From Mytilus trossulus (lineage: Eukaryota): DNA of 64,000 nucleotides. Location: contig NC_086375.1 in NCBI RefSeq assembly GCF_036588685.1, positions 58,342,001 to 58,406,000 of the forward strand. The letters run 5' to 3'. The notes beneath the pieces were generated by a model. The model was not told the DNA's origin, searched no databases, and worked only from the letters and a program-made list of their open reading frames with translations. The position numbers were made by a program, and so were the translations under genes. Position 1 is the first letter of the stretch. Each line of letters begins with the position of its first letter. Of the stretch, positions 26,220 to 61,452 are shown in pieces.

Positions 26220-27659
26220 TTTCTTTGGACTCCGAGTAAATTTTGAGGTGAAAACGCCATTTTAGGCAAGGGTACACATGAACCTTAAAAAAGCGTATAA
26301 AATGTTTTGTAAGAGGCAAGACAGCATCTAGCTATGACAACAACAGTTTACATTCTGTACAGCAATAATTATTTTTTCTTGACTCAGTCCAAAACATTTT
26401 TTCCCAGAAAATGTGCAAAAAAAAAGAGGAGAAATGAGTTAAGTGAAAGGTTACTTCGCATCCTTTTTATACTGCGGTCAAAATTTGAGGAGGTTGAAAG
26501 TTATCTAGGCTGTTCTCAATTTCTGGAGATACTTTGAGAGGAAGTTTTAATTTCAGTTATCGTTATTTCAGATATTTTACAAAATATGAATGATTAATTT
26601 ACTATTTAATTAAAAACTGCCTAATATTTATATATGCTATTATACACTACAATGCATCACAGCGGTTGTAAATTCAACCACTATCAAATTTTTTTTGCAA
26701 GAATGGATGGAAGACTTTTTGGTTATATTGTTTTTATATTGAGCGCATTTCTGTATCTATATATAATTATCTATTATCTGATCTTCAACATTTGCCCCCT
26801 CTGTTCACATATCAATCTGTTATTCAAATTAATATCGGATTTTAAGAGATGATTTTTTTTTCTTCATCAGTTTTCATAGATATTATATGTTCATTGACAT
26901 TTTTTATACAGTGGGAATGACCTGCATATATATTATATGGATGAACGAATTTTGTGTATCAGGGTTATTTTTCTGGCTAGCGATTTTTTTCGGTTCTTTT
27001 GATCTCATTATGATCGCACACAGCGAACATCATTTCTAACTCTAGTACTTTTTACATTGTTTTGAAATCGTTTGACATATTAGTGTTTTCGTTTTCAGGT
27101 CTTCTTGAAACTGTATTGACATTTGTTGATATAGATGCTAGTTATTATTTCTGTTTAGAGAGTAATCAATCGAATTTGTGTTTTTTTCGGCGTTCACAAG
27201 TGCTTTGTAGCGGAAACCGGTGAATAAATGTGATGGGTTTTGAGCAAATTTTATATGAAGGTCTCTTCTTGGATTGTGCTCCATGTTTGTGTGCATTAAG
27301 CCATAGTCGTGACTTTTCCTGACCATGATAGTTATTGAAAAGGAAAACAAATCATTTTCAGGTGAAAACAAAAATACTAATTTTCATTCTTTTCTAAAAT
27401 TTAAAGCACATAACCTATGAGACCTAAAATGAACAAAATGAAATACCCTAAGTTTGTAATTTGTCATCAAAACAAAGAATGTGTGCTTGAATTACAAAGT
27501 ATCAGATAAAGGCCGAGTTATATGCAAATTTATTCTTTTTTTAATAAATGAGATACAAAATCTGACATCACGAGCGACACATTATAATTTGTTGAGGAAA
27601 ACCCCTTTTTTAAACCAAACAGCGGCATACTACTGTTGCCTTTATATATTCATCTTTTC

Positions 27660-28370
27660 TACTAATCCATCAGATTCAGGTCTATAGGGACAAGTACGGC
27701 AATTGTCATCAAGGAAAGCTTTAAGTTTGCTGTTGTTTTTTTCCCTATGTCACCATATTGTCCAAGCATTTCTACAAAGTCTTCATTTTCTTCTATCTTA
27801 TCTTTTAGTTCTTTCTTTCCAAGACTCATGGTATACTTAACCAATTTCTTCGGCAGATGGAATTTCTGTCACCCTCCTCTATCTATATACGTAATCAGTC
27901 TCTGTGGATTTTCTCTTCCTCTTAACAACATGTCCAGTTTCTTCGGATGGTAATTGTACGGCCCTCTTACTGTCATAGGAGTTCGAGCGTTGACGCCATA
28001 TGATGGTGGCAACATCTTTTGCATTTTTTGTACTTGTTATTGTACCAGATGATACATCTGTTACAAACTGTGTAGCCCATGGTTCTGGATCATGTGCCTC
28101 CCCCTTTGCCATCCAGAATGCCAATTTCTTGTTCCTTGTAATTTCATTTTTTTTGATATTTTCTTTGTAAGAAGAGTCTGTAAGCTGCTTAAGAGGTCTT
28201 GTTATGGCACATATGTTTGCCTGCTCTAGATTATCTTTTGATCAGTTCATGAAGTAATTTTTGTTGTGTCTAGTTACAATTATGTGTACTCTGTCTAAAA
28301 CAGGCATTTGCTTAGGAAAGTCTGAAATAGCTGTGTAATACCAGCCATATCAAAATTTGTTTAATGATGA
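27660..28370 (-). pseudogene. Decayed coding sequence of unknown family (mirror copy at ~58225-60370, +)
   Basis: About 200 codons readable across one stop and one frameshift: ISDFPKQMPVLDRVHIIVTRH...KKLAFWMAKGEAHDPEPWATQFVTDV / LPPSYGVN...PYNYHPKKLDMLLRGR...QKFHLPKKLVKYTMSLGKKELKDKIEENEDFVEMLGQYGDIGK. Confidence 0.5.
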
Positions 28371-28724
28371 CCTAAGAAAGAATAATGGATATTCGGTCTA
28401 GCCGACACATCATTCAAACCCGCCATCACTTACATGGAATTAGTAGAGATGAGAGATGCTGCTACGCTATTACCAATAATTGAAAAGGCAGTAAAACCTG
28501 ATACCATCATATATTCTGACCAGCGGAAAGCATACTGTAATATACAAACAGAACTTAAACTACAACATGCAACAATCAACCACTCAGTGAATTTTGTTGA
28601 CCATGAAACATGGGTACACACACAAACCATTGAATCCTACTGGGCCAAGGCTAAATACAAGTTCAAAGTAATGAAAGGTGTATCATCAGACCTTCTTCCA
28701 AACTATCTAGATGAAAGAATGTGA
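28370..28724 (+). mobile_element. Merlin / ISXO2 (IS1595-family) DDE transposase remnant
   Basis: RDAATLLPII...PDTIIYSDQRKAY...HATINHSVNFVD..T.VHTQTIESYWAKAK...YLDE are IS1595/Merlin motifs. Confidence 0.88.
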
Positions 28725-29199
28725 AGAGTTCCACATATACATATATATATAAACAGAGTTTATTTTTGAACAAACAAACGATTCCAAAGATTCCACAATA
28801 CCCTGACGGGATGCAAACTACATTGAAAACAGCTTTTCGGGGGTTAAACCAAGAATTAAGACTTCAGATAAAAAAAAAATCTTAATGTCAAGGTCATTAT
28901 TATGCCAAACTCAAACCATCAACTAATTTGGTATAAAACTATTATAAGGTCACCGTTTGAAACCTGAGGTGTAAGGTTATCCTGTACCATACATGTTTTC
29001 CATGTCATTTGCTGATCGGATTTTATAACCTGTATAGGCGCTACAAATAGTGAATCTGTTTCTAACTGACAATTGTCACTGTTTTTAGCCGACACAAGAT
29101 CTTTGTTCGTACAATCAGGACAAGCTTCTCTCTTTCATTTTTCAAAGGGGCGCCTGATAAACCATAAGCATTTGTGTGCAAACTACCACATCGATGTTC

Positions 29200-30460
29200 C
29201 AAAACCATTTTATAAGTATCCAATGAACGTATCCAACGGGCTTTTATACCTTCAGGAATTTTGATTTTTTTTCAGCCAAATCAATGAGGCGTGATCGGTC
29301 CTGACCTTAAAATGTTGACCTAACAAATAATGTCTAAACTGCTTACCAATTGTGACTTCCTGTTAGTAGTACAAAATTTTCTTTGTAAATCACTAAAAGT
29401 TTTACTGATATATGCAATAATTTGTCCTCACCATCTTTGATTTGTGACAAAACGGCATCTATACCATTGGCACTTGCATCAGTATCTTATACATAATCAC
29501 CGTCCTCCCTAGGACAAATCAAAATAGGGACCGACATCAATATCTCCTTCAATTTATCAAAACCTTTTTGAAAATCGTCAGACCTCTTAAAATTTCTAGC
29601 TTTCTTAGTTAACTCCGTGAGAGGGGACTCAATCTCTGAAAAGTTTGGAATATATTTCTGGTAATACCAAGCAAGTCCCAGACAACTTCTGATCTCGGTT
29701 AAAAAGGTTGGAACTGACCAATTTGTTTACAGTCGTCTCAACTTTACTTGGATCACAACTGACATATGTATTAGATACTACATGACCAAAGAACACACCT
29801 TGAGTTTGAAACATTGTACATTTACTTGGTTTCAGTTTCAAATTAGTAGACTTAAATCTTTGAAAAAGCAGTCTCACATTTTCGAAAGTCTTTTCAAATG
29901 TTTCTCCAAAAATAATGCCGTCATCTAAATAGCATAGACAGCGTTCCCATTGATAGCCTTTTAAAACTTTCAATTAGACATTTGAAAGTTTGGGGTGCTC
30001 CACTGAGACCGAAAGGAAGTACTTTAATCTAAAAAAAGACCCTTATATGACGTAAAAGCAGTCTTTTCTTTCATGTCAGGTGACATTTCACATTGCTAAT
30101 ATTCAGACGTTAATTCAATTGTACAAAAGACTATTTCCCCGGAAAGTATCTATAGACTCATCTAGTCTGGGCAAAGGATATGCATCTTTTTTTGTTATTG
30201 CATTTAATGGAAGAAAATCAACACAGAACCTAAATGAGTATTCTTTCTAGTGACTAGGAATATAGGACTGGACCATGCACTTGAACTTGGATCTTTTGCA
30301 TCATTTTCCAACATTTTGTCTATTTGTGTTTCTATAGTTTTTCTTTGAGTCAAAGGAACAACAAGTATAGGTTAAGCATCTCTCTCGTGTCAATGGAATG
30401 TTTTACAATGCAAGTACTACCAGTTTTCCATCAGGACTTGTAAAACTATCCTGGAATTCA
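29200..30460 (-). mobile_element. Decayed Gypsy/Ty3 LTR retrotransposon pol (RT-RNase H)
   Basis: CLCYLDDGIIFG...NLKLKPSKC, DTDAS-like and VRTDHASL-like motifs, with several stops and frameshifts. Confidence 0.9.
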
Positions 30461-31262
30461 ACTTTTATTATTTTTTGTCGAGCCTTCGACTTTTGTCGAA
30501 AAAGCGAGACATAGCGATCCTACATATCAAGCTTTACAGGTTTAAATTTAGACTGAAAACCAAACGGAATCGCATGATCAACTCCTTAAGTAACGAGACG
30601 ATCAAGGGATACCACCTAGGGTAACAGCATCTGTTGCTAAGCATGCATTATATATTCTTTCACGAATATAAAGTTATAAACAGCAAGAATGAAACCTCGA
30701 TCGAAGAAATGCGAAAAACGGTACTAATTTCAGATTAAAAGAATGGACATGTGGGATGAGTGGCCAAATATACGTTTTTTTATTGTTTAAGTATAAAAGA
30801 AAAGTGATACAATGTTTTCAATTTTTTCAGCAGAGAGCATTTTATCTGAAATGAAGGCAATTATTTACCATAAAAAAATGGTCCTTGAAAACCACCATGA
30901 TTGAAAACGTTTTTGACTTTGTTATTGGTATGGAAAAAGATATACTAATGTAAAAGTCAAGATTGCATACTATATCTACCGTTTTATTGACAAAAAAGTA
31001 TGTTTTTGTCATGTTAAGGTGAATAACACAAAGGTAAGGTACCGATTACAGGTGTGTGTACATGATGTTTATTAATGTCTCTCTGTAATGGTAATTTCCC
31101 TATGACCATTTCCCAACTTAAAAATAAACTCGTTTATCATTTTGACAAGACAGGAAAAATATATCAAACTGTCCATTATAACACGGAAACATATTTTTTC
31201 CCGTTTAATTGCGTCGTTGAAATATTTCAAAATTTCATAAAAGGATGATATTGTTTCTTTTT

Positions 31263-31360
31263 TATATAAATAACTTTTTTGTTTTTTGGAAGTGCAGACC
31301 TACTTGGCCCTTTTGATAGAAAAAACCATTATATAGAATAAAGAAGAGAAACATGTGAGT
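31263..31360 (+). promoter_or_regulatory. TATA box and non-coding exon 1 of peptide gene A
   Basis: TATATAAATA at 31263-31272 and donor acat|GTGAGT at 31355. The mirror copy keeps TATAAATA (55396-55403) and acat|GTAAGT (55317). Confidence 0.65.
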
Positions 31361-31634
31361 TCATTTTTAAATATAAAGTTAATGCCATCAATGAAGTTTA
31401 CAATCTCGATTGTCTTTTACCTAAGGGAACAAAGGGGTGGAGTTGGGTGAACATACTTAACATTATTTTAATTGGCTTTCACACATTTCTGTAAAAATTC
31501 GGTACTTTTTTTTGGGGGGGGGGGGGTCTCACAAAATTTGTTATAAAAAATCTTTTCATGTGAAAACATCTATTTACTCTTCCGGATTCAATCGTGAAGG
31601 TCATTTTGATTTAAAAAAAAATATTTTTCAGAAA

Positions 31635-31859
31635 ATGAAGAGTGTACTTTTTATTACTGTTATTGCTGTGACATTATTGTGTGTTGTAAATGGACGGGGT
31701 GGTTCTCCTGGTGCACCAGGAAGACCAGGAGAACCAGGACGACCTGGAGGAACTGATTGGGGGTTTGAAACTACTACTACTTGGCCTATTGATGGAGGCT
31801 GTGGAGGAGAACCTGGTTACCCCGGAGGCCAGGGAGGGAGAGGAGGAAGAGGCTGTTGA
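31635..31859 (+). CDS. Small secreted Gly/Pro-rich peptide precursor, copy A (74 aa)
   Basis: MKSVLFITVIAVTLLCVVNG|RGGSPGAPGRPGEPGRPGGTDWGFETTTTWPIDGGCGGEPGYPGGQGGRGGRGC*. Signal-peptide-like N-terminus; acceptor ttttcag (31631) 3 nt before the ATG; donor GTATGT (31868) 8 nt after the stop; acceptor at 32432; AATAAA at 32507. GC-rich island in AT-rich DNA with an intact paralogue. Confidence 0.9.
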   Translation: MKSVLFITVIAVTLLCVVNGRGGSPGAPGRPGEPGRPGGTDWGFETTTTWPIDGGCGGEPGYPGGQGGRGGRGC

Positions 31860-31892
31860 GGTTCAAGGTATGTGTTCGTTAGAATTAGAAAT

Positions 31893-32080
31893 TATTTACA
31901 ATATATGTTCTATATATTGTAAATAATTTCATGTTAAACTTTTAAACATGTTTAACTTTTTTTATTCGTAACATTTGTTCTATAAAACATTTTAAACTTT
32001 TTTATTCACAATACTTGTTCTAGAAAACATGTTAACCTTTTTTTTATTTACAATATTTGTTCAATAAAACATGTCAATCT
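31893..32080. repeat. AT-rich minisatellite in intron 2 of gene A (mirror at ~54629-54790)
   Basis: Repeated ttttttattcacaatatttgttctataaaacatgtt-like units of about 36-40 bp. Confidence 0.75.
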
Positions 32081-32699
32081 TTTTTAACCTCTGATAATGA
32101 AAGTCTTTTATAGCTGACTATGTGGTATAGGCTTTGCTAATTGTTGATGGCCGTGCGGTGACCTATATTTGTTAATTTCTGTGTCATTCTAGTCTCTTGT
32201 AGAGATTTGTCTCATTGGCAATCATACCACTACTTCTTTTTTTATTATGCGATATCAAAGATTTGAATAGCTTCTATTGATAAGTACAAAGTGGATTCAA
32301 AACAGAGAAAAAAAACACATTATAATGAAGTATTGAACAAAGGTACCATTTAGGTACTTGTATACATTGATTACTTTATAATTTTGCAAATAATATCAAA
32401 CCTGTTCCATTTATTAAGTTATTTCTTTTCAGAATTATTGGTTTCCCCGTCAATAGGGCTATTAGGAGATAGAAAAAGAGTTACCAAAAAGAATTTTGTA
32501 GTTTTTAATAAAAATATTTCAAATACAGCAATCTTATCAATGCATGCATTTTCACTATATGTAAGCGTCAACGTCATTTATAGATTTAACTTTGAGCACT
32601 AATTATGATATTTCTTTAAGAGAATATCTATAATTTTGGAGAAGATGATGCTTCGTTGATTATTGACCTCCAGTGGGAAATTAAATGCATATTCAGGAC

Positions 32700-32975
32700 G
32701 AAAATGTGACACGAATACAATCCATGCTTGTATTGGTAATAGACTGACACACTACGCCTTCTTTTCATAGCTAGTTCACAATTTAACAGTTCTAAAAAGA
32801 CATGTCGACTAAACGGAATCATTATTGTGACTCCAAGACGAATAGTTTTTGTTTTTCCCTGTAATTGCAGCGTGCAAAGCGGGAGGTTCAATTTTTTTCT
32901 CTCAAGTATTTGGTTTTACCTGGCCAAGGAGGATTGAATCCACGACCTCCCACATATGAAGCGAGCATGCTACAT
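32700..32975 (-). mobile_element. tRNA-derived SINE-like remnant (mirror at ~53555-54020, interrupted by an insertion)
   Basis: Minus strand reads tagcatgctcgcttcatatgtgggaggtcgtggattcaatcc, resembling a tRNA anticodon/T-arm with a B-box-like motif, followed by a non-tRNA body. Confidence 0.5.
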
Positions 32976-34394
32976 TGATAGACTGGAATATTAAAATTAT
33001 CAAACAAATCAATACTTTCATATCGTTTTTGTGATATGTTTTTTCCGAAGCTAACTGAAGTCTTAAAATACTTGATATAATATTTAAGGGATGAAGTGGC
33101 TTTTTTTTGGTGATGTGGAGGGAGGAGGGCGTGGTGCTTTAACGTACTTGCACAAAATGTATGACACTTTTATAAGAGTTTTTTACAAGGATATATGATG
33201 TAATCTGTTTTAAGGCGCTCTGTTGTTCTAATTTTATAAGTGAAAAACACAACAGCGACACCATCACAAAAATAGTCCTTAAAAAATACCAAAAAGACAA
33301 ATATCAGTGCTCGAAAATCTTCATAATAAAAATGTACTACGGGAATCGAATATCTAACAAAAACTGGTGATACCAGGTGTTCTTGAAGGGATTAAATGCA
33401 CCGTCCTTTTGCCCATCAGCCTCATCATTACTCATTATATCTGATATGGAACTTTGCAAAAAGTGTTTTATTTTTTATTTGCCCATAGGAAAACATTTCA
33501 ATTGTATGAATTCCATATAACTACAAATACTAAACAGTTTGTAAGTGTGCACTGTTAGTATCCACTATAATACCGACGTTTTGTTGAATTGTCAATCCGT
33601 CAAATTCAGTAAATATATACATGTCGATCAAATAGTCTAGCATTTCTAGGAGGATGGTTGAACGATAACAAACATAAATCGAACAACAAATGTTAAAAAG
33701 GCCAAAATAAGTACAATTTTGAAGAGCAATGAGAGCCAAATATGCAAGAGGTCTTTGTTTTCAAGCTTTTTCAGCTATATTAATTCCAATTATATAACCA
33801 GTCTTGTTGATCTTTTGTCTTGTAAAAGATGTTTCTTGTTTAAATTTTCACATTCGGTGGAGCAGAATCAGCTAACCATACCCCAGCTCTCGAGATAACT
33901 TCCGGTAATAAGTGCGGTTTGTGTTGCTAAGTCCATAGCTTTCCATGCTGTGTTTTTTATACTGTTGTTTCATTTGTCTTTTGGTCCTTATTTGTCATAG
34001 CGTTGTTATTCGAATTATGAAACTTGTACTCTCAAGCTTGACAGTGCACGTGGTTACAAAGCAAACGGTCGAAATCAACAATGACTTTTTATATCCAGTA
34101 AAAATTCTTAATATATTAGTTAAATAACTGCGACTAATTTCAAATTGGTACTGTCTAACTTTAGTGTTTTGTAAGTAATTGTTTTGCTTTGTATCGATCT
34201 GATGAGTCAAACCCTCTTTGAATTATTTTAATCGCCTTTTTGTCTTATCCTGTTACATCACTAACACATGTTTTGGGAGGATGGTCACCTGCAACCACTC
34301 ACAATCCAGGAAAGTAAGGAGCCAGTTATCCAGTGGGTGTCGTTATTTGCACCAACATGGGACGATTGGTTTTCTTGTTTGATACATTTTGTCA

Positions 34395-34617
34395 AGAGAA
34401 GACAAGACAAGACAATCTCTAAATACAATTTATTACAACTTAGGCACACGTATGGTGCTACAAGAGGATAACAATTATACATTAACAATTACATATATAC
34501 GTATACAATTACAAGCAAGACACACAATAAATTAATAATTGATATCATACAATAAAACTGAAATATATTTAGTTGATTTGTTTGCAAAATTCTTAATTGC
34601 AACGTAATTAGAAATTC
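34395..34617 (-). mobile_element. Left-arm-specific 5'-truncated LINE 3' end
   Basis: Absent from the right arm (empty site near 50335-50345). Flanked by tttgtca at 34388-34394 and 34618-34624; the minus strand ends AATAAA...(tgtct)n. Confidence 0.7.
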
Positions 34618-35289
34618 TTTGTCATGTTTGGTCCTTACATATTAATATTTTGTATGGTTTTGCTCATTGTTGAATGTCTTATGGTGACCTATATATCTAC
34701 AAATTTGGTCTCTGGTAAATAGTTACCTCACTGACTATCATGTTACATTTAGTACTTAATGCCTGTTGATTATTGATAGAAGGAGAACAATGATCACTCG
34801 GTCGCGTTCATTTTTTACTTTACAACAGAGGACATGTCGATTTAGAACAGTTAAGTCAATGTCAACAAAATCATTCTTATCTACTTTTCCTTTTCTATAA
34901 GATTAAAAACAAAATGATGAAAACGTCCAATAATATCACTGCAAGTCTTCCAGACTTTGAATGATAACTTTTATTTTTAATTTTTTTGTAATTGTATTTA
35001 AAATGTGACCTTTTAATAATGGGCTTTGAAGAGGAATGTGGTAAGATCGTAACTTCGTAGGATGAACCGAAAACTAAAAAAAGAAAAAAAGAAACTGCTT
35101 TTATCATTATTGAAGTTTGCACGGTGACATTAAGCTATTACCCTCATGTTCATTGATCTAAAAATTAAATCTTTCCATATTTTTTTTTCGCCCATTGCAC
35201 GGACTGTCAAGATTTCGAATCATGACATATATGTTGCATCCAAATCAATCATGAATGAAAAAACATCGGTATCACATTTCGTCAATACG

Positions 35290-36330
35290 AAAATTTGAGA
35301 CACCGATGACGTTTTACAAGGTCTGAGTAGCAGCTGCAATCTTTAGAATATCGTATGAATTGAAAATTGTATACGTCATACGCCAGTGAAGTAAGCACAT
35401 TGATGCTAAGATGAGCAAACTAAAACTTGCAAAATTGACATCGTCTCGTTTGTCATAGATAATAGTACCGAGATGACCGTTGTTTTCAAATTCGAGGTTA
35501 ATGTTTAGAAATGAAGCTGTGAATGTCGTTTCGTAAATCTCGAGTTCAGTAAGATATACTAGTATTAATGGCTAAGGGAAAGAACATCATCAATATACCT
35601 GAATGAGAATTTAAATAATCTAGCTTTTTTATCTTCTTTTTTTACAAGTGTCTGATGGAACTCCGAATCATGAAATTTAACAAAAGGAAATTGGTTTCTG
35701 ATTTCAAGGATGTGTGTTTTGTCGATAAAAAGAGTGAAACGGTTCGTGAAAAAATATCATAGTGTAATAACATATCTCCTTATCTTGCATGGCTCATGTA
35801 CTTGAAATATCATTAAAAACATCTTATTTAGTTGTCTTCCATTATTTAATTTTTGTTATAGAGGATATGTAGTAAATTATGTGTATAATCGTTTTTAGTG
35901 TAACGTTGACAGGCGTTGATAGGACGATACTTGATGAAGGCGTGACAAACTATAACTTTCCTCCAATCAACTACTAGTATCCCATTGAACACAGTGAATT
36001 AAGCGTTGGGGGTGACACGTGATGTTTCATCTCACAGGCATGGTCATTCATATCATTTTCAAAGTAAGGTTGACATTGACAAGTTGCTTTCAGACGCTGA
36101 CACGAGGTTATGTGTAATTCATTCCAAACCTAATTTGTTGCACTTCATAGGTGTAAGGTATTTTTTTTCTTCTTTCATATATACAACTTCCATTTTCTTG
36201 TGTATAATTAAGATAATAAGAATAAAATCAGTTCGCGAGATCTTTTTTAGAGCTGCGGTCCTATGGAAATTGTCTGTTTGATGCATTTACAAAAGAGTTT
36301 TCAACTGGTGAAACTATTATAAAGAATATC
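35290..36330 (-). mobile_element. Decayed Penelope-like RT
   Basis: FRYIDDVLSL and GHLGTIIYDKRDD motifs on the minus strand, heavily frameshifted. Confidence 0.75.
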
Positions 36331-41335: not shown

Positions 41336-41838
41336 AAAAGGACAAAGAAGAAAAACAACGTTGCATCGTGACACTATTTTTTCAACCTGTATTCTACCTA
41401 AGGTTGATATCATAAACTTGCATTAAGTTTTGGTGTTAACGGCAAACTTTTGGCCTGTTCCATTAACATCATATTTATTTGCCCTTATGAATAAACCCTT
41501 TGAATGCAATGCTCAAAAACGTTTTAAAGCATTTTACTTTTGAATTTTTTACTCGACAACTTACTTACAACAACAACAAAAAACATAAAAAAAACCACAG
41601 GTTCGATTGAAACTTAATTTTAGAAATTATTGGACGTTTAAAATCAACATGTAACGATTGCCTATGTTATCATAAAGATACTCGTTCTCCTTTTAAAAAG
41701 AAGGGAACGTTTGATTGCCTGGCAAAATATTTTCAGTATTTTGAGAAAAAGAATTTCGTTGTTTGTTATTTCATTGTAACAAGGAGTAGCATATGACACT
41801 TTGGAAAATCGTTTTTTAAATGAATATGTTAACCTCAT

Positions 41839-49680: not shown

Positions 49681-52600
49681 TTGACGAACAGTGATACCGA
49701 TATTTTTTTTTTGTTCATGATTGATTTGGATGCAACATATATGTCATGGTTCGAAATCTTCTTGACAGTCCGTGCAATGGGCGAAAAAAAATATGGAAAG
49801 ATTTAATTTTTAGATCAATGAACATGAGGGTAATAGCTTAATGTCACCGTGCAAACTTCAATAATGATAAAAGCAGTTTCTTTTTTTCTCTTTTTTTAGT
49901 TTTCGGTTCATCCTACGACGTGACGATCTTACCACATTCATCTTCAAAACCCATTATTAAAAGGTCACATTTTAAATACAATTACAAACAAATTAAAAAT
50001 AAAAGTTATCATTCAAAGTGATATTATTGGACGTTTTCATCATTTTGTTTTTAATCTTGAAGAAAAAAGGGAAAAGTAGATAAGAATGATTTTGTTGACA
50101 TTGACTTAACTGTTCTAAATCGACATGTCCTCTGTTGTATAGTAAAAAAAGAACGCGACCGAGTGATCATTGTTTTCTTTCTATCAATAATCAACAGGCA
50201 TTAAGTACTAGATGTAACATGATTGTCATTGAGGTAACTATTTACCAGAGACCAAATTTGTAGATATATAGGTCACCATAAGACAGTCAACAATGAGCAA
50301 AACCATACAAAATATTAATATGTAAGGACCAAACATGACAAAATGTATCAAACGAGAAAACCAACCGTCCCATGTTGGTGCAAAAAACGACACCCACTGG
50401 ATAACAGGCTCCTTACTTGGCTTTATTGTGAGTGGTTGCTGGTGACCATCCTCCCTAAACATGTGTCAGTGATGTAACAGGATAAGAAAAAAGGCTATTA
50501 AAATCAATCAAAGAGGGTTTGACTCATCAGATCGATACAAAGAAAAACAATAACTAACAAAACACCAAAGTTAGACAGTACCAATCTGAAAGTAGTCGCA
50601 GTTACATAAACTTGTTAACAGCCTAAATAACTTTAATATATTAAGATGTTTTACTAGAAATAAAAATCCATTGTTGATTTCGAATTTTCGATTTTCAACA
50701 ATGAGCAAAACCATACAAAATAGTAATATGTAAGGACCAAACATGACAACGAGAAAACCAACCGTCCCATGTTGGTGCAAAAAACGACACCCACTGGATA
50801 ACAAAATGATGTATATCGCTTTCATATTCATTTGTTAAAATTTACTGGTTGCAATAGCATTAAGTGTTCTATATTATAAGGATGTTCTTATCCCGTGCAT
50901 AAAAACAATGCCGTGTTTGTCATAACCTTTTCAACTTTTGATCTTCAGTGCTGTACAACTTTGTACCGTTTTCACGTTCGATCTTTTATATCTAGGCGTT
51001 ATGTATTCAGGTTTAGTTTTCTGTAATTTTTATACTTCAGTTTCTTTATGTATATCTCTTTCATATTCATTTGATAAAATTTACTGTTTGCAATAGCATG
51101 AATTGTTCTATATAATAAGAATGTTCTTATCCCGGGCATAAAAACAATGTCGTATTTGGCGAAACCTTTTCAACTTTTGATCTTCAGTGCTGTACAACTT
51201 TGTACTTTTTTCACTTTCGATCTTTTATATCTGGGCGTCACTGTGGACCAGGCGCGTTTTTGGCGTATTGAATTTTAAACCTGATGCTTTTTGTCATCTA
51301 TTAATCATGTTTTTCTTTGTCTAATATGTTCTCCTATTTATTTGTATTGTAGTCCTGTAATATTATGTTGTCATTTCAATATTATATTTAACTTTGCCAT
51401 TAAAGTGCGAGGTTTGGCATGCCATAAAACCAGGTTTAACCCACCACTTTTATTCCCCTTTAAAAGTGTCCTGTACCAAGTCAGGAAGATGGTCATTGTT
51501 ATATTGTTGTTCGTTTCTCTGTGTGTTGCATTTTAACGTTGAGTCGTTTGTGTTTTCTCTTATTTTTGAGATATTGAGATAAGACGTGGCACGGTACTTG
51601 TCTATCCCAAATTCTTGTATTTGGTTTTCATGTTATATTTGTTATTCTCGTGGTGTTTTGTCTAATGATTGGTCAGTTTCTGTGTGTGTTGCGTTTCGGT
51701 GTTGTGTCGTTGTTCTCCTCTTATATTTAATGCGTTTCGCTCGGTTTTGGTTTGTTACCCCGATTTTGTTTTTTGTCCATGGATTTATGAGTTTTGAACA
51801 GCGGTATACTACTGTTGCCTTTATTTACCAATCTGAAAGTAGTCGCAGTTACTTAAACTTGTTAACAGCCTAAATAACTTTAATATATTTAGATGTTTTA
51901 CTAGAAATAAAAATCCATTGTTGATTTCGACCGGTTGCTTTGTTACCACGTGCACTGTCACGCTTGAGAGTACAAATTTCATAAGTCAAATAACAACGCC
52001 ATGACTAAACAAGAACTATCTTTAAAAAAAGATATCCGACGTATTAAAATTTGAGTATATGCTTACAACTATCATTTCGATAACCTTTAGAAGCACAATG
52101 ACTTAATGATGCAGGACCTCTTTAATAAAATCTCCATCTGAATGTAACTACAAGAAATTCATTACTAAGTCTGATTATATTAAGGCAATAATATATAAAA
52201 AATATTGTGATGACACCTACAAATTTTATTTGTCAAAAAATCCAGTACAAATAACAAGAAACAAATATACATTGATTACTGTTTACATTAAACTTAATTC
52301 ATGGTTAACAAAGCTAGAAACTATTGGTAGTAGTATCTTTCTGTTTACATTCGCCAAAACCCCGCGGAAATCTCATATGCATAGGTGCGTTCTAAAAGTC
52401 ATGTACGTTTGAACAACAAAGTTTACATTTAAAATTATAACATTGTCCCGAATAAATAGCTGTCATGGATGCAAAGAGCTATTGGAGAAACAATTAGTTT
52501 AGTAAAAATACAATTCTTTGTAAGATCTAGTTCAAATATTTATAGTTTTTCACTTGCTTTCCATCATGATATAATTTTCGAGACGTTTTTTCAAACACAA

Positions 52601-53562
52601 CCAAATCACCCACCATGACAGCATTTTGTCCAATCACAGAAAGGATTTTCGAGCATGCGTATTCTGTTGCCATAGTCAAGCGTCCTCAAGTTCAAAGGGC
52701 ACACACCGAACTATACCGACTACGTCGGAAAAAGGACTAAAAGACAAATGAAATAACAGTTTACAAAACACAGCATGGAAAGCTATGGACTAATCAACAC
52801 AAACCGCATTAATTACCGGAAGTGATCTCGAGAGCTGGGGTAGGGTTAGCTGATTCCGTTCCATCGAATGTGAAAATTTAAACAAGAAACATCTTTTACA
52901 AGACAAAGGATCAACAAGACTGGCTTTATAATTGGAATTAATATAGCTGAAATCTTTCCTACAGGCAAAATGAAAACAAAGACCTCTTGCATATTTGGCC
53001 CTCAATTCTCTTCAAAATTGTACTTATTTTGGCCTTTTTAACATTTGTTAATTCGAGCGTCTCTTATGAGTCTTTTGTAAAACAATTACCTCAGGTCGAC
53101 ATCCACTAAAATACAGGCTACTGACTGTTGACAGACATTTAGAATATTGTCTGTTTGTGAACGTTAAACCATCCTCCTAAAAACGCTAGACCTTGTGATC
53201 GACATATACACATTTACTGAATTTGACAATTCAACAAAACGTCGGTACTATAGTGGATACTAACAGTGCACACTTACAAACTGTTTAGTACTTAAAGTTA
53301 TTTGAATCGGAATTCATACAGTTGAATAAATCTTTTCCTTAAGGCAAATAAAAAAAAACACTTTTGCAAAGTTCCATATCAGATATAATGTATAAAGATG
53401 AGGCTGATGGGCAAAATGACAGTGCAATTGAAACCTTCAAGAAGTTATTTTAACAAGTATTTTAAGACTTCAGTTAGCCTCGGAAAAACCAAATCACAAA
53501 TACGATATGAAAGTATCGATTTCTTTGATAATTTAAATATTCCAGTCTATCAACGTAGCATG

Positions 53563-53746
53563 TCCAGGCATATATTACCGTAGCCGTATTTGGCACAACC
53601 TTTTGGAATTTTGGATCCTTAATGCTCTTCAACTTTGTACTTGTTTGGCTTATAAACATTTTGATATGAGCGTCACTGATGAGTCTTATATAGACGAAAC
53701 GCGCGTCTGGCGTACTAAATTATAAACTTGGTACCTTTGATAACTA
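53563..53746. mobile_element. Right-arm-specific short interspersed repeat insertion
   Basis: Splits tagcatg|tcgcttcatatg, which is uninterrupted in the left arm (~32953-32972). Same family as copies at ~37780-37925 and ~39066-39165. Confidence 0.75.
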
Positions 53747-54818
53747 TTCGCTTCATATGTGGGAGGTCGTGGATTCGACCCTTGGCCGGGTAAAATCAAA
53801 TACTAGTACTTGAGAAAATAAATTGAACCTCCCGCTATGCACGCTGCATTTACAAGGGAAAACAAAAACTATACGTCTTGGAGTCATAATAATGATTCCG
53901 TTTAGTCGACATGTTTTTTTTTAACTGTTACATTGTGAACTTGCGATGCAAGAAATGCTTAGTGTGTCGGTCTATTACCAATACAAGTAGTGATTGTATT
54001 CGTGTCACATTTTCGTCCTGAATATGCATTTAATTTCCACTGAACTTCAATCATCAATCCAGCATCATCTTCTCTAAATTTATAGATATTCTCTAAAAGA
54101 AATATCATCATTTGTGCGCAAAGTTAAATCTATAAATGACGTACACGCTTACATGTAGTGCAAATGCATGCATTGAAACGATTGATGTATTTGCAATATT
54201 TTTTTATTAAAAACTAAAAATTCCTTTTGTTAACTCTATTTTCATCCATGTGTGGACCAATAATTCTGAAAAGAGATAACTTCATTAATGAAACAATTTG
54301 ATATTATTTGCAAATCTTATGAAAAATCAATGCATACAAATACCTTTATGGTCCATTTTTTCAACACTCGATTAAAATGTGGTTAATTTCTCTCGTTTTA
54401 AATAATTCCACTTTGTAATCATCAATAGTAGCCTTTCAAATTCTGGTATATACGTATTGTAAGACTTACATTATAAGATAGTAAAATAGGGGCCCTTAAT
54501 AGCTGACTATAAACGGTATGGGCTCTGCTCATTGTTGAAGGCCGTACGGTGACCTATAATTGTTAATGTCATTTTTGGTCTTTTGTGGATAGTTGTCTCA
54601 TTGGCAATCATACCACATCTTCTTTTTTATAACATGTTTTATAGAACAAATGTTGTAAATGAAAAAAAGTTTTACATGATTTATAGAACAAATACTGTGG
54701 ATAAAAAGAGTTAAACATGTTCTAAAAAACAAATAATGTGAAATAAAAAAGTTTAACATGTTTTGTAGAACAATTATTGCTACTAATTTCTGCTTTTAAA
54801 GAACACATACTTTGAACC

Positions 54819-55049
54819 TTAACAGCCTCTTCCTCCTCTCCCTCCCTGGCCTCCTGGGGTACCAGGTTCACCTCCACAGCCTCCATCAATAGGCCAAGTA
54901 GTAGTTTCATATCCCCAATCTGGTCCTCCAGGTTGTCCAGGTTCTCCTGGTCCTCCTCGTGATCCTGGTGCACCAGGAGAACCACCCCGTCCATTTACAA
55001 AACACAATAGTGTCACAGCAATAACAGTAATAAAAAGTACACTCTTCAT
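54819..55049 (-). CDS. Small secreted Gly/Pro-rich peptide precursor, copy B (76 aa)
   Basis: MKSVLFITVIAVTLLCFVNG|RGGSPGAPGSRGGPGEPGQPGGPDWGYETTTWPIDGGCGGEPGTPGGQGGRGGRGC*. Acceptor 55053-55054, donor 54810, acceptor 54266-54267 and AATAAA 54203-54208 are all conserved with copy A. Confidence 0.9.
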   Translation of the reverse strand: MKSVLFITVIAVTLLCFVNGRGGSPGAPGSRGGPGEPGQPGGPDWGYETTTWPIDGGCGGEPGTPGGQGGRGGRGC

Positions 55050-56184
55050 TTTCTGTAAGAAAATTATTTTTTGGAATCAAAATGACCTTCACTATTGAAT
55101 CCGGAAGAGTAAATAGATGTTCTCACCTGAAAAGATTTTTTATAAAAAATTACGTATTTTACTAGATTTACAATGCATCAATGTGTGAAAGCCGATTAAA
55201 ATTATATAAAGTATGTTTACCAAATTCCCTTCCACACTTTTATTCCCTTAAGCAAAAGTCAATCGAGGTTGTAAACTTCATTGATGGTATTAACTTTATA
55301 TTTAAAAATAAACTTACATGTTTCTCTTCTTTATTCTAAAATATTTTTTTTTTCAAATAGGCAAAAGAAGTCTGCACATCCAAAGAGTAAAAACTTATTT
55401 ATATCAAAAGGTAAACAATATTAGGACATCCTTTTGTGACATTTTGAAATATTTCAACGACGCAATTAAACAGGAAAAAATATATTTCCGTGTTATAATG
55501 GACAGTTTGATAAAATGTTCCTGTCTTGTCAAAATAATAAACGAGTTTACTTTTAAGTTGGGAAATGGTCATAGGGAAATAACCATTACAGAGAGACATT
55601 AATAGCCATCACATACAAACACCTATGTAATCTGGTAACTTACCTTTGTGTTATTCACCTTAACATGACAAAAACATACTGTTTTGTCGATAAAACGGTA
55701 GATATAGTATGCAATCTTGACTATTACATTAGTATATCTTTTTCAATACCCATAACAAAGGCAAAAACGTTTTCAATCATGGTGGTTTTCAAGGACAATT
55801 TATTTTATGGTGAATAGTTGCCTTCATTTCAGATAAAATGCTCTGCTGAAAAAATTGTATCACTTTTCTTTTATACTAAAACAATAGAAAAACGTTTATT
55901 TGGCCACTCATCCCACATGTCCATTCTTTTAATCTGAAATTACTACCATTTTTCGCATTTCTTCATTCGAGGTTTTATTCTTACTATTTATAACTTAATA
56001 TTCGTGAAAGAATGATGCATGCTTAGCAACAGATGCTATGTTACCCCAGTTGGTATCCCTTGATCGTCTCGTTACTTTAGAAGCTGATCATGCTATTCCG
56101 TTTGGTTTTCACTCTAAAGTTTGAACCTGGGCTTGATATGTAGGATCGCTATGTCTCGCTTTCTCGATAAAAATCGAAGGCTCG

Positions 56185-57450
56185 ACAAAACATAATAATT
56201 GTTGAATACCAGGATAGTTTTACAAGTCCTGGTGGAAAACTGGGTCGTACTGGCATTGTAAAACATTCCATTGACACGAGAGAGATGCTTAACCTATACG
56301 TGTTCCTCCTCAAAGGGTTCCTTTGACTCAAAAGAAAAACTATAGAAACAGAGATAGACAAAATGTTGGAAAATGATGCAATAGAGCCAAGTTCAAATGC
56401 ATGGTCCATACCTATATTACTAGTCACTAGAAAGATTACTCATTTAGGTTCTGTGTTGATTTTCGTCCATTAAATGCAGTTACAAAAAAAGATGCATATC
56501 CTCTGCCCCGACTAGATGAATCTTTATATACTTTCGGGAGAAATAGTCTTTTGTACAATTGATTTAACGGCTGGATATTAGCAATGTAAAATATCACCTG
56601 ACATGAAAGTAAAGACTGCTTTTACGTCACATAAGGGTCTTTTTCAGATTAAAGTACTTCATATCGGTCTCAGTAGAGCACCTCAAACTTTCAAACGTCT
56701 AATCGAAACAGTTTTAAAAGGCTATCAATAGGAACGCTGTCTATGCTGTTTAGATGACGGCATTATTTTTGGAGAAACATTTGAAAAGACATTCGAAAAT
56801 TTGAGACTACTTTTTTAAAGATTTAAGTCTACCAATTTGAAACTAAAACCAAGTAAATGTACTATGTTTCAAATTCAAGGTGTGTTCTTAGATCATGTAG
56901 TATCTAATAAAGATGTCAGTTGTGATCCAAGTAAAGTTGAGACTGTAAAAAAAATGGTCAGTTCCAACCTGTTTAACCGAGATGAGAAGTTGTCTGGGAC
57001 TTGCTGGGAATTACAAGAAATATATTCCAAACTTTTCAGAGATTGCGTCCCCTCTCACGGAGTTGACTAAGAAAGCTAGAAATTTTAAGAGGTCTGACGA
57101 TTGTCAAAAAGGTATTGATAAATTGAAGAAAATATTGATTTCGGTCCCTATTTTGATTTTTCCTAGGGAGGACAGTGAATATGTATTAGATACTGATTCA
57201 AGTGTCAATGGTATAGATTTTATTTGTCACAAATCAAAGATGGTGAGGAAAAATTATTGCATATAGCAGTAAAACTCTTAGTGATTTCCAAAGAAAATTT
57301 TGTACTACTAATAGGTAGTCACATTTGTTAAGCAGTTTAGACATTATTTGTTAGGTCAACATTTTAAGGTCAGGACCGATTACGCCTCTTTGATTTGGCT
57401 GAAAAATTTCAAAAATCCTGAAGGTATAATAGCCCGTTGGATAAGTTCAT
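56185..57450 (+). mobile_element. Mirror copy of the decayed Gypsy pol
   Basis: IEPSSNAWSIP...[22 protein letters not shown]...KLKPSKC...IPNFSEIASPLTELTKK...YVLDTDSS. Confidence 0.9.
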
Positions 57451-57869
57451 AAAATATGTTAGAGAGAAGCTTGTCCTGAGTGTACTAACAAAGATCGTGT
57501 GTCGGCTAAAAACAGTGACAATTGTCACTTAGAAACAGATTCACTATCTTTAGCGCCTATACAGGTTATAAAATCCGATCAGCAAATGACATGGAAAAAA
57601 TGTATGGTACAGGATATTCTTACACCTCATGTTGCAAACGGTGACCTTATAATAGTTGTATACCAAATTAGTTGATGGTTTGAGTTTGGCAAAATAATGA
57701 CCATGACATTAAGGTTTTTTTTTTATCTGAAGTCTTAATTTATGGTTTAACCCGCCGAAACGTTGTTTTCAATGTAGTTTATATCCCGTCAGAGTATAGT
57801 GGAATTTTTGGAATCGTTTGTTTTTTCAAAACAAAATTCTGTATTACATGTATATTTGTGAAAATATAT

Positions 57870-58225
57870 GGAACTCTCCACATTCTTTCATCTAGATAGT
57901 TTGGATGAAGGTCTGATGATACACCTTTCATTACTTTGAACTTGTATTTATCCTTGGCCCAGTAGGATTTAATGGCTTGTGTGTGCACCCCTGTTTCAGG
58001 GTCAACAAAATTCACCTAGTGGTTGACTGTTGCATGTTGTAGTTTAAGTTCTGTTTGTATATTACATTATGCTTTCCACAGAATATATGATGGTGTCAGG
58101 TTTCACTGCCTTTTCAATTATTGGTAATAGCGTAGCAGCATCTCTCTTCTCTACTAATTCCATGTAAGTGATGGCGGGTTTGAATGATGTGTCGGCTGGA
58201 CCAAATATCCATTATTCTTTCTTAG
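57870..58225 (-). mobile_element. Mirror copy of the Merlin / ISXO2 transposase remnant
   Basis: NFVDPETGVHTQAIKSYWAKDKYKFKVMKGVSSDLHPNYLDERMWR; reverse complement of 28370-28730. Confidence 0.88.
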
Positions 58226-58570
58226 GTCGTCATTAACCAAATTTTGATATGGCTGGTATTACACAGCTATTTTCAGACTTTCCTAAGCAGATGTCTGTTT
58301 TAGACAGAGTACACATAATTGTAACTAGACACAAAAACAGTTATTTCATGAACTGATCAACAGAACAACTAGACCAGTCAAACATATGTGCCATAGCAAG
58401 ACCTCTGAAGCCGCTCACAGACTCTTCTTACAAAGAAAATATCAAGAAAAGTGAAGTAACAAGGGACAAGAAATTGGCATTCTGTATGGCAGAGGGAGAA
58501 GCACATGATCCAGAACCATGGGCTACACAATTTGTAACAGATGTATCATCTGGTACAATAACAAGTATAA

Positions 58571-60020
58571 ACTAGATTTGTAATTGCTAGCAATAACGGA
58601 TGGCACCCTCCCCCTCATTGCCAGGTGAGCGGCAGCCATTTTGAAAATTCCAAAGTCGAAGAATGCATTTACAGATGGCAAGTAACATTTTTGCCAAGTT
58701 TCATTAAGTTTGAAGCATTTTGAAATTTCTGATATTTTAGCTGTTTCCATGGTAACGGCAGCCATTTTGAAAATTCCAAAGTCAAACTGGAAAACAGCAC
58801 ATGCCAGTTAACATTCCTGTGGAGTTTCTTCCAGTTTGGAACACTTTGATTTTTTTCGCATTTGTGCTGTTTCCATGGAAACGGCGGCCATCTTTTACCA
58901 TTCCATAGCAAGGTGCACAACTTCAAATGGGGTTCCTCATTATAGTTGAGTTCCATAAACATTGGTCCGTTCAATTCTGAGAACTCGCGCGGACAAAATG
59001 TGTGGAAGAAAAATAAAAATAAGAAACTAGATTTGCCATTGCAAGCAATAGCGGATGGCACCCTTCCCCTATTGCCAGGTGAGTGGCAGCCATTTAGAAA
59101 ATTCCAAAGTCATAAGAGTGCTTCTACACATGCAAATTATCACTTTTGTGAAGTTTCATTAAGTTTGGAGCATTTTGAAATTTTGGATTTTTTTGGTGTT
59201 GCCATGGTGGCGGCGGCCATTTTGAAAATTCCAACTTCAAAATGCAACTCTGCACATATCAGTTACCATTCCTGTAACGTTTCATCCAGTGAGTAGCACT
59301 TTGATTTTTTTTAGAAAATTTTGAACATTTTTGCTGTAACCATGGTTACAGTAGATAATTCCAAAATTCTAAAAGCAGACATCTCATTGCCACATGTCAT
59401 GTTATATATCAATACAGTTTTATTCCATTTGGTGCAAATTTTTTTGAGAAAATGCAGAATTTATGCATTTTTCCATAGGGTCAATGCAAAACTTGCTCCT
59501 TGTTTCCATGACAACAGCGGCCATTTTGGACTATCCAAATATTGTTTTGACATCTTAGGTTACTGGGTAACATTTTCATAAAGTTTCGTCTAGTTGGGTC
59601 TTATAACGAAAGAGTTAGCATTTTTGATATTTTAGTTGTTTCCATGGTAACGGCAGCCATTTTAAAAATTCCAAGACCAAAATGCAGCTCAGGCTATGCC
59701 TATTACTATTTCAGTGAAGTTTCATCCAGTTTGGAACATTTTGAATATTTTCGGATTTTTGCTGTTTCCATGGAAACGGCAGCCATTTTGACCATTCCAA
59801 AGTCAGGTGCACAACTTCACATGCTGGTCCACATTATGGTATAGTTCCATCAACAATGGTCAACTCAATTCCAAGAAACTGCGTGGACAAAATGTGTGGA
59901 AGAAGAATAAGGAAAAAAAGAATCGATGAATAACAATACGTCACCCCAACTCCGTTGAGGGTGCCATAAAAAAGAAACGTAGAATAACAATATGTCACCC
60001 CAACTCCGTTGAGGGTGCCA
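58571..60020. mobile_element. Right-arm-specific ~1.45-kb Helentron/HINE-like insertion with internal tandem repeats
   Basis: Empty site at ~28021-28040 in the left arm. Repeated ccatggtaacggcagccattttgaaaattcc units, a duplicated head (58571, 59027) and a duplicated terminal hairpin caccccaactccgttgagggtg. Confidence 0.8.
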
Positions 60021-61452
60021 TAAAAATGCAAGATATGCTGCCACCATCATATGGCGTCAACACTCAAACTCCTATGACAGTAAGAGAACCGTACAATTTC
60101 CATCCGAGTAAACTGGACATGTTGTTAAGAGGAAGAGGAAATCCACAGAGACTGATTACGTATATAGATAGAGGAGGGTGGCAGAAATTCCATCTGCCGA
60201 AGAAATTGGTTAAGTATACCATGAGTCTTGGAAAGAAAGAACTAAAAGATAAGATAGAAGAAAATGAAGACTTTGTAGAAATGCTTGGACAATATGGTGA
60301 CATAGGAAAATAACCACAGAAGACTTAAAGCTTTCCTTGATGACAATTGCCGTACTTGTCCCTATAGGCCTGAATCTGATGGATTAGCAGAAAGGATGAA
60401 TATATAAAGGCAACAGTAGTATGCCGCTGTTTGGTTTTAAAAGGGGTTTTCCTTAACAAAGTATAATGTGTCACTCGTGATGTCAGATTTTGTATCGCAT
60501 TTATTAAAAAAAGAATAAATATGCATATAACTCGGCCTTTATCTGATACTTTGTAATTCAAACACACATTCTTTGTTATGATGACAAATTAAAAACTTGG
60601 GGTATTTCATTTTGTTCATTTTAGGCTTCATAGGTTAATATGTGCTTATAAATTTAGAAAAGAATAAAAATTAGTACTTTTGTTTTTATCTGAAAATGAT
60701 TTGTTTTCCTTTTCAATAACTATCATGGTCACGAAAAGTCACGACTATGGCTTAATGCACACAAAAATGGAACAAAATCAAAGAAGAGACCTCCATATAA
60801 CATTTGCTCAAAGCCACCAACAGTCATTAACTCAAAATCCATCACATTTATTCGTCAGTTTCCGCTACAGAGCACTCACTCACACACAAATTCGATTACT
60901 CTCTAAACAGAAATAATAACCGGCATATATATCAACAAAAGTCAATACAGTTTCAAGAAGACCTGATAAGGAAAACACTTATATGTCAAACGATTTCAAA
61001 ACAATGTAAAAAGTACAAGAGTTAGAAATGATGTTCGCTGTGTGCGATTATAATGAAATCAAAAGAACCGAGCCAGTCAGAAATCGCTAGCTAGAAAAAT
61101 AACGCTGATACACAAAATTCGTTCAACCATATAATATATATGCAGGTCATTCCCACTGTATAAAAAATGTAAATGAAAATATAATATCTTTGAAAACTGA
61201 TGAAGAAAAAAAATCATCTCTGAAAATCCTATATTAAATAACCTATTTTATTTGGTATCCATGATATTACTTTCTGTCCTATCATCATTTCCTTGAAAGA
61301 GGGTTCTACTAATAGGACATCTATTCATTAAAGCTTCTAGTATGTAATATTGAAGTCATGTATTTGAAGATTGTGGCGTTCGTTTGATGCGTTTGAGCTT
61401 TTAAAATTGCCATTTGATAAGGGACTTTCTATTTTAAATTTTTCTTGGAGTT

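Follow-up and report, generated by a model that had tools for sequence, protein, structure and literature searches.

An inverted duplication and a candidate cluster of genes for tiny secreted glycine-rich peptides in Mytilus trossulus

Organization of the inverted duplication

The stretch analysed here, referred to as the window, comprises 64,000 nucleotides of Mytilus trossulus contig NC_086375.1 (C3:58342001-58406000, C3 being the window's contig) and contains a large palindrome with three genes, A, B and C, for very small glycine-rich peptides that carry predicted signal peptides. Gene A corresponds to an open reading frame (ORF) at 31635-31859 (+; 74 aa) in the left arm, gene B to an ORF at 54819-55049 (-; 76 aa) in the right arm, and gene C to an ORF at 41839-41997 (-; 52 aa) in the spacer; glycine makes up 39%, 41% and 38%, respectively, of their mature regions. 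A and B are convergent and their products are 92% identical, and the sequence of C is unrelated to that of either. Unless a contig is named, positions are counted from the first nucleotide of the window.

26829..41559, no strand: left arm, 14,731 bp; full-length genome matches solely to the right arm, homology beginning sharply at 26829
41560..42713, no strand: spacer with gene C, 1,154 bp; unique, no second copy in the 1.3-Gb assembly
42714..61237, no strand: right arm, 18,524 bp; arm-specific insertions account for the extra size

The window contains no runs of N. A repeat search returned 25 collinear inverted pairs within it, and the self-BLAST chain runs from 26829/61237 at its outermost point to 41559/42714 at its innermost. 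The right arm is longer than the left because of insertions without a left-arm counterpart, which were located by self-BLAST at 58572-60021 (1,450 bp), 50605-51880, 52017-52728, 45410-46242 and 47298-47949. In whole-genome searches, the outermost arm piece had a full-length match only in the other arm (90%), and the mid-arm piece 34618-37027 matched in full length only itself and the other arm (95%); a 375-bp core of the latter piece resembles an old dispersed repeat at ~72%. The 429 bp to the left of 26829 are unique sequence. A description of the arms as a mere mosaic of dispersed repeats was rejected, since full-length matches exist arm-to-arm only.

Two collinear inverted arms, present twice in the genome and separated by a unique spacer, constitute a genomic palindrome, and judged from the sequence the inverted duplication (a two-copy segmental duplication) is very probably real and far beyond chance. 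The first-pass annotation of this DNA had proposed two inverted arms of ~14.7 and ~18.5 kb around a spacer of ~1.15 kb, and self-BLAST gives the lengths listed above. Its three micro-ORFs with signal peptides were recovered at the same positions and orientations, with glycine contents of 38-41% against the ~38-39% it had given, and its derivation of the A/B pair by inverted duplication agrees with arms that match in full length only each other.

Between the arms, Kimura two-parameter (K2P) divergence was 0.07-0.12 across the outer half (26829-34394) and dropped to 0.036-0.043 over 34618-38437 in the middle; the innermost part, where repeats are abundant, gave 0.056-0.07. The step in divergence fits either gene conversion confined to the inner arms or an origin in two steps, and the low mid-arm value would be best explained by arm-to-arm gene conversion. 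It was also observed that K2P falls where the right arm has ~2 kb of additional insertions.

An assembly artefact, in which two haplotypes of one locus were joined head to head and A and B are alleles, was considered as an alternative origin of the palindrome. One report describes mussel genomes as highly heterozygous, with abundant hemizygous blocks (PMC10138031), and the assembly is without a second spacer copy, hence without an independent haplotig for comparison. Such a join is opposed by the continuous, N-free sequence and by sharp arm ends that give way on either side to unrelated, unique sequence within a contig of 94 Mb, where a head-to-head haplotig join would be expected to run on past the arm ends; moreover, the arms are set apart by a unique, gene-bearing 1.15-kb spacer. 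Divergence between the arms is 4-12%, in addition to several kb of insertions, and contigs of DNA run X2, which is from another animal with a different organism label, match the left arm at ~98-99% over 31773-35487. A and B are therefore taken to be paralogues rather than alleles, and a haplotype mis-join is considered very improbable.

Structure, expression and constraint of genes A, B and C

The gene models are given below; C' is a relative of gene C located to the right of the window.

31250..31354 (+): gene A exon 1, 5' untranslated region (UTR), from an RNA contig; the 5' end is the contig start and the extent a minimum
31355..31631 (+): gene A intron 1, 277 nt, GT..AG; joint 31354>31632 in RNA runs X4 and X6
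31632..31867 (+): gene A exon 2, with the entire coding sequence (CDS) 31635-31859, from RNA contigs; predicted GTATGT donor at 31868
54811..55052 (-): gene B exon 2, CDS 54819-55049, from homology to A; acceptor and donor intact
55318..55419 (-): gene B exon 1, from homology to A; GTAAGT donor at 55317
41834..42010 (-): predicted gene C exon 2, CDS 41839-41997; product ends GGGG-RRK; acceptor and post-stop AG/GT shared with C'
42077..42140 (-): predicted gene C exon 1 (5' UTR), conserved with C'; 5' end approximate

Gene A is a real, expressed gene, a conclusion that is close to certain. In the A/B alignment, a TTTTCAG acceptor lies 3 nt upstream of the ATG, a GTATGT donor 8 nt past the stop, and a GTGAGT/GTAAGT donor ~280 nt upstream. 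Five small probable-RNA runs (one organism label, two studies) contained 12-19% of the sampled words of 31300-32200, an interval in which the exon share is ~27%. Three RNA runs (X4, X6 and X14) and DNA run X2 were aligned to 30600-36500. Record 17 of X4 matches 31250-31354 with 0 differences and is spliced straight to 31632-31861. Intron 1 is proven, because the joint 31354>31632 is present in X4 and X6, which come from two studies, and absent from X2, in which contigs 31471-31802 and 31773-32083 cross both exon borders. Beyond the stop, X14 (a third organism label) matches 31687-31867 at 97% and then leaves the genome at the predicted donor with 17 unaligned letters, and record 25 of X6 leaves it at 31865 with 59 unaligned letters; an intron starting at 31868 is thus supported, not proven. 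Absence of transcripts, named in the first-pass annotation as a ground for abandoning the locus, does not hold for gene A, for which spliced RNA contigs come from two studies.

Among the matches listed, the RNA contigs are A-type, with 0-2 differences. A T40P variant of A (31752 A>C) was present in all four runs aligned, and X6 (RNA) and X2 (DNA) both have 9 extra nt, in frame, behind 31714, by which one P-G-R unit is gained. Two alternative-frame ORFs, at 31690-31926 (+; 78 aa) and 54725-54994 (-; 90 aa), overlap the A and B coding exons; they are very acidic, are open in both arms, and are probably a by-product of GGN/CCN/GAA codon bias.

Gene B has kept its start codon, signal peptide, reading frame and stop, together with all four of the splice signals. 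Its identity to A is 94.8% in exon 2 and 89.8% in intron 1; in the exon, 12 of 232 aligned positions differ, in addition to two in-frame indels, and the position of the stop is conserved (TGA vs TAA). All coding indels of A and B, including the 9-nt population variant, are in frame.

For gene C, an intron of ~66 nt (42076-42011) with a GTAAGT donor is predicted. Comparison with C' showed that the 5'-UTR block, the GT(A/G)AGT donor, the ~66-nt intron, the acceptor and the post-stop AG/GT have been kept and that the flanks have decayed. The ancestral start of C has been lost (ATG to ATC; 41997-42005, -) and is retained in C' and in P0001; the start shift is compensated by an ATT-to-ATG change, which creates a new start two codons downstream. 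Intact counterparts of C, 54 aa long, occur in public runs as P0001 and P0003, and P0001 is 81% identical to it.

Ratios of nonsynonymous to synonymous divergence (dN/dS) were 0.46 for A-B (dS 0.11), 0.33 for A-D (dS 0.71), 0.28 for B-D (dS 0.71) and 0.52 for C-C' (dS 0.35), D being an A/B-type gene farther along the contig. The A-B dS is about as high as neutral divergence in the surrounding arm. The split between C and C' predates the palindrome, because its dS is 0.35 as against 0.11. The palindrome accounts for the A/B pair only.

Alternatively, A could be the sole working gene, with B and C silent or decaying and the cluster made up in part of chance ORFs in low-complexity DNA rich in glycine codons. 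The RNA evidence concerns A alone, the contigs among the matches listed being A-type and not B-type; in gene C the ancestral ATG is gone and the splice signals are weak, and poly-Gly tracts may remain open by chance. Such decay is at odds with the intact signals of B, with an exon better conserved than the intron (94.8 vs 89.8%) and with the A-B dN/dS of 0.46, and, for C, with a regained ATG, an intact signal peptide, a dN/dS of 0.52 against C' and an intact counterpart in a public run. Seven ORFs with a signal peptide and a glycine-rich mature part within 70 kb, and zero in the 100 kb to the left, likewise form a non-chance pattern. An A-only locus is accordingly held to be improbable; B is probably a functional gene, and the same likelihood is assigned to C.

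The wider gene cluster and its surroundings

A six-frame search over the genome was combined with a scan of 100 kb on each side of the window. The following further members were identified.

C3 58411561-58411737 (-): C', 58 aa; 8.3 kb outside the right arm
C3 58423117-58423428 (+): E103, 103 aa
C3 58433970-58434200 (-): F76, 76 aa
C3 58443491-58443739 (+): G82, 82 aa; 81% Gly
C3 58744595 (+): F', 68% identical to F76; shared PPC-x-PWP-x-C loop and poly-Gly tail
C3 58774465 (-): D, 77 aa, A/B-type; 58-67% identical to A and B
C11:11769807-11770010 (-): L004, contig-11 relative; an 8-Cys tail follows the A-like signal and G-X-P block

The first four of these lie 5.5 to 38 kb to the right of the window, and each has a signal peptide and a mature part with 42-81% Gly. 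At least seven genes (A, B, C, C', E103, F76 and G82) are thus contained within 70 kb, and F' and D form a second sub-cluster 340-400 kb to the right. The scan of the 100 kb left of the window found no glycine-rich signal-peptide ORFs, and a search 100 kb to either side for micro-ORFs with a signal peptide and the same acceptor signature that are not glycine-rich gave no convincing extra member. A second copy on contig 11, at C11:8328554-8328703, has an in-frame TGA, and P0006 is a 47-aa counterpart of L004 from a public run.

Most members share a common layout, consisting of a 5'-UTR exon, an intron that ends 1-13 nt before the ATG, and a single exon containing the whole prepropeptide. An acceptor 1-9 nt ahead of the ATG, together with a consensus-like donor 3-8 nt past the stop, is present in A, B, D, F76, G82 and L004. 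Under a fixed rule, an acceptor was present in 9 of 10 members, compared with 12% of 692 ORFs (40-120 aa; 264 kb), a consensus-like donor in 6 of 10 compared with 15% of the background, and both together in 6 of 10 compared with ~1-2%. An intron in the 3' UTR with the stop so near the exon junction should not trigger nonsense-mediated decay. The shared exon design provides a practical rule for finding more such genes.

A typical N-terminal signal peptide was predicted in all members, whose products would thereby be expected to enter the secretory pathway. Mature lengths range from 34 to 84 aa, with 0-1 Tyr per peptide. Those of A, B and D are 54-58 aa long, with pI 4.9-6.3, 39-45% Gly and 15-17% Pro, and each has two runs, 5-7 G-X-Y triplets long and without interruption, in which Y is mostly the site of Pro; a Trp/Thr linker connects the runs in A and B. 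An invariant Cys pair in A, B and D, with one residue at the start of the second run and the other at the extreme C-terminus, could form a loop of 18-21 residues at the C-terminal end. In C and C' the mature part is 34-38 aa, with pI 12, a charge of +4 to +7, 0 Cys and a G-RRK end. In F76 and F' a basic head bears the conserved PPC-x-PWP-x-C loop, and the poly-Gly tail behind it terminates in KK or R; G82 has a KR site followed by 81% Gly and a GK end. C, C', F76, F' and G82 are cationic (38-81% Gly; +4 to +7). A pI above 11 was calculated for C, C', F76 and G82 (11.8-12), compared with 10.95 for F' and 4.9-6.3 for A, B, D and E103. The C-terminal Gly and basic residues of the cationic members would be the usual substrate for carboxypeptidase trimming and amidation.

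No Pfam family was matched by any of nine peptides, even at an E value of 1. A protein search with A against 5.8 billion clustered proteins gave no candidate, with C only the unnamed Logan ORF P0001, and with E103 only unnamed ORFs from genomic Logan contigs; no named myticalin was among the protein-search results. A HMMER profile built from A, B, D and L004 retrieved only generic collagen repeats and the P0006 fragment from 1.8 billion representatives, and the ESM Atlas gave no usable match, the nearest cluster carrying PF01391 with a weak score of 0.75. Literature searches with four short diagnostic peptide motifs and by topic gave no description of these peptides. The peptides had been called an uncharacterised secreted family in the first-pass annotation, to be given up upon a match to a described family, and that view stands, with no Pfam family, named homologue, usable atlas match or literature motif match. 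Its proposal that the palindrome organizes a three-gene cluster is not supported and should be dropped, since C' and three more glycine-rich genes lie outside the right arm and F' and D 340-400 kb away. With C', E103, F76, G82, F' and D all situated beyond it, the palindrome represents a single local duplication within a cluster of wider extent.

The genes form a cluster of at least seven members with a second sub-cluster, and the family is previously undescribed. The overall reading, to which a probability of about 60% is assigned, is that of an inverted duplication inside a larger, lineage-restricted cluster of tiny secreted glycine-rich peptide genes. A number of points weigh against it. 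The continuity of the palindrome, including both spacer junctions and the end at 61237, is based on assembled contig sequence and homology. RNA support is limited to A, the models of B and C coming from homology and conservation, and a 3' exon of A was not found within 30600-36500. In C and C' the layout is the same and the sites are weaker (post-stop donors GTTAAC and GTATAC), and E103 and F' have an acceptor with no obvious post-stop donor. The splice-signal rule was revised once (window length and pyrimidine filter), and its P value is indicative only. The non-cationic A, B and D (pI 4.9-6.3) are atypical for antimicrobial peptides, and glycine-rich proteins with basic ends are already represented among bivalve shell-matrix proteins by the shematrins and KRMPs. 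The odds given below for different roles rest on sequence features, no observation separating defence from matrix.

Under the overall reading, the inverted duplication copied a 15-kb segment that is rich in transposable elements (TEs) and carries one peptide gene, which gave the paralogues A and B. It flanks a gene of another type, C, that was already present; the older paralogue of C, C', is situated beyond the palindrome. The remainder of the structure contains the following features.

28386..28721 (+): ISXO2-like DDE transposase fragment (DDE_Tnp_IS1595; PF12762, E 8e-15)
29632..29973 (-): reverse-transcriptase (RT) fragment (RVT_1; Pfam), mirrored in the right arm
56949-57263 (+): RT_RNaseH_2 match within the right-arm mirror of the 29632..29973 RT fragment
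40402..41193, no strand: 166-bp tandem array at the inner end of the left arm; mirror 43034-43840
38875-39576 and 44660-45498; 31944-32086 and 54630-54773: further mirrored tandem arrays

The mirrored arrays are satellite-like, their units measuring 166-174, 71 and 40 bp. The inner arm ends bear 166-bp and 71-bp arrays, and the 166-bp unit, which forms these ends, sits in a dispersed element with more than 150 copies genome-wide that may have supplied the inverted homology with which the fold-back began. No ORFs of 110 aa or more, other than TE fragments, were found within the duplication. Apart from its genes, the structure had been described as transposon debris, and this is matched by transposase, RT and RNase H fragments, arrays and high-copy repeats.

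Some further observations were made in the right arm and the left flank. A type-I hammerhead ribozyme motif (Rfam RF00163) was detected at 53670-53713 (+), with 34.5 bits against a gathering threshold of 34, inside a 185-bp insertion present in the right arm only (53563-53747), and may form part of a ribozyme-bearing repeat of retrozyme or Penelope-like type. The left flank contains an exon-like match to the FIBP family at 5336-5662 (-; PF05427, E 1e-15), a weak CD20-like match at 18786-18980 (+) that is under the cut-off (E 0.0015), and a LINE-type RNase H/RT remnant at 13304-15295 (-).

Possible roles and comparison with known systems

Mussels are unusually resistant to infection, and almost all of the defence peptides known from them are stabilised by cysteines; in arthropods, glycine-rich peptides are a major antimicrobial class. 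According to a 2025 paper, glycine-rich peptides have not been reported as defence peptides in bivalves (PMC12294457). For the peptides described here, the leading proposal, held tentatively, is that they are extracellular effectors of host-defence or mucosal type. The absence of any role, or some other role, is unlikely, and a function of the family in signalling more so.

A structural role is somewhat less likely than defence. The peptides would then be glycine-rich, partly collagen-like chains, secreted by mantle edge or foot glands into extracellular material such as shell, periostracum or byssus matrix. This possibility draws on the G-X-Y runs of A, B and D, with Pro in Y (the position of collagen hydroxylation), their Cys pair and near-neutral charge, on the basic Cys head and poly-Gly tail of F76 and F', which recall the KRMP/shematrin layout, and on the profile search, in which the matches to known proteins were of collagen type only. 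It is weakened by mature lengths far below those of known matrix proteins, by the near absence of Tyr (the usual cross-linking or DOPA residue), by the unmatched Pfam Collagen family and lack of a homologue among deposited proteins, and by the C-terminal Gly and basic residues, a classic amidation signal of bioactive peptides (PMC5577615). If the peptides are structural, no matrix component of collagen-like or poly-Gly type described from molluscs would be smaller.

A neuropeptide- or hormone-like function of the C-type genes, with products acting on receptors, would agree with their short precursor, the internal RR in C and the C-terminal Gly-Arg-Arg-Lys amidation signal. The internal RR is lacking in C', adjacent paralogues share only 65% identity, a sign of fast evolution, and the genes are lineage-restricted, with no homologue elsewhere, and sit among compositionally biased genes, none of which is typical of neuropeptides; such a function is regarded as highly doubtful. 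A more ambitious proposal goes beyond the effector reading and is, as a whole, on the unlikely side: the locus would represent the first glycine-rich secreted peptide superfamily of bivalves, mussel-restricted, with at least 12 genes in two sub-clusters on one chromosome and a myticalin-related exon design that places the entire prepropeptide in a single internal exon, in which C, C', F and G would be amidated mucosal antimicrobial peptides (AMPs), A, B and D a collagen-mimetic, disulfide-looped type, and A and B kept in concert by arm conversion.

Whichever role applies, the locus is a concrete candidate set of at least seven unannotated genes in 70 kb, one of them transcribed and spliced, with peptides short enough for synthesis. 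Standard annotation misses this type of gene, the products being absent from 15 billion proteins except as unnamed ORFs of raw assemblies. The palindrome is useful as a dated example of cluster growth.

Among known systems, the myticalins of Mytilus gills are antimicrobial peptides that are linear and cationic (PMC5577615, PMC12294457). Their precursor consists of a signal peptide, a cationic mature peptide, a dibasic site plus a C-terminal extension that is anionic (PMC12294457), and Gly with basic residues at the mature end is read as an amidation signal (PMC5577615, PMC12294457). Like the genes described here, they are a lineage-restricted, multigenic group whose members cluster within kilobases; exon 1 consists of 5' UTR only, intron 1 is ~300 nt long (277 nt in A) and ends just before the ATG, signal and whole mature peptide share one exon, a second intron follows almost at once, and there is a terminal Gly-basic amidation signal. 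They differ in that their anionic extension continues across a phase-1 intron, whereas here the stop lies 3-8 nt before the predicted intron and no extension follows, and in being enriched in Pro, Arg, Trp, Ser or Thr instead of Gly; A, B and D, moreover, are non-cationic and carry two Cys. In place of the tripartite precursor, the ORFs stop right after the mature part or the basic residues, and in place of three exons with a phase-1 intron in the CDS, the CDS is uninterrupted. For the strongly cationic mature peptide of myticalins (pI above 11, more than 10% Arg) the picture was mixed, C, C', F76 and G82 agreeing with it, F' lying just below and A, B, D and E103 deviating. The genes are not myticalins, because the anionic extension and the phase-1 CDS intron are both absent. 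Common ancestry is possible, the two being set apart here by published description and not by sequence comparison.

The cationic members also resemble the glycine-rich AMPs of arthropods and nematodes. These include the acanthoscurrins, ctenidins and armadillidin, and the nlp-29/cnc clusters of C. elegans. Shared features are small secreted precursors of extreme glycine content that are often cationic and in some cases amidated, and the nlp-29/cnc genes likewise form tight clusters of fast-diverging paralogues, the GGGW-type ends of E103 being reminiscent of NLP/CNC peptides. There is no detectable sequence homology, and the resemblance of the cationic members is one of composition only. By composition (secreted, small, rich in Gly, positively charged), C, C', F76, F' and G82 belong to this class, and A, B, D and E103 fall outside it by charge.

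Shematrins and KRMPs share with the present peptides a signal peptide, a glycine-rich body and a basic C-terminus, and the basic Cys head and Gly tail of KRMPs are similar to those of F76 and F'. They are larger and rich in Gly/Tyr, compared with 0-1 Tyr here, and searches of the 5.8-billion and 1.8-billion protein sets gave no homology to them. With collagens, cnidarian minicollagens and nematode cuticle collagens, A, B and D have in common the G-X-Y runs, the placing of Pro mostly at Y and cysteines on either side of the second run; they differ in having only two runs of 5-7 triplets and no trimerisation domain, and PF01391 was unmatched at an E value of 1. A homotrimer prediction with three copies of mature A gave a score of 0.02, which counts neither for nor against a trimer.

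Gene-bearing palindromes with arm-to-arm conversion exist elsewhere, for example on primate sex chromosomes, and these share with the present structure inverted arms, a short unique spacer, a duplicated gene borne on the arms, and uneven arm identity suggestive of conversion. The arms here are 4-12% diverged rather than more than 99.9% identical, are 15-18 kb long and consist mostly of TE debris. The palindrome is an ordinary kind of structural variant, and clustered, fast-evolving genes for secreted low-complexity peptides are a known kind of gene.

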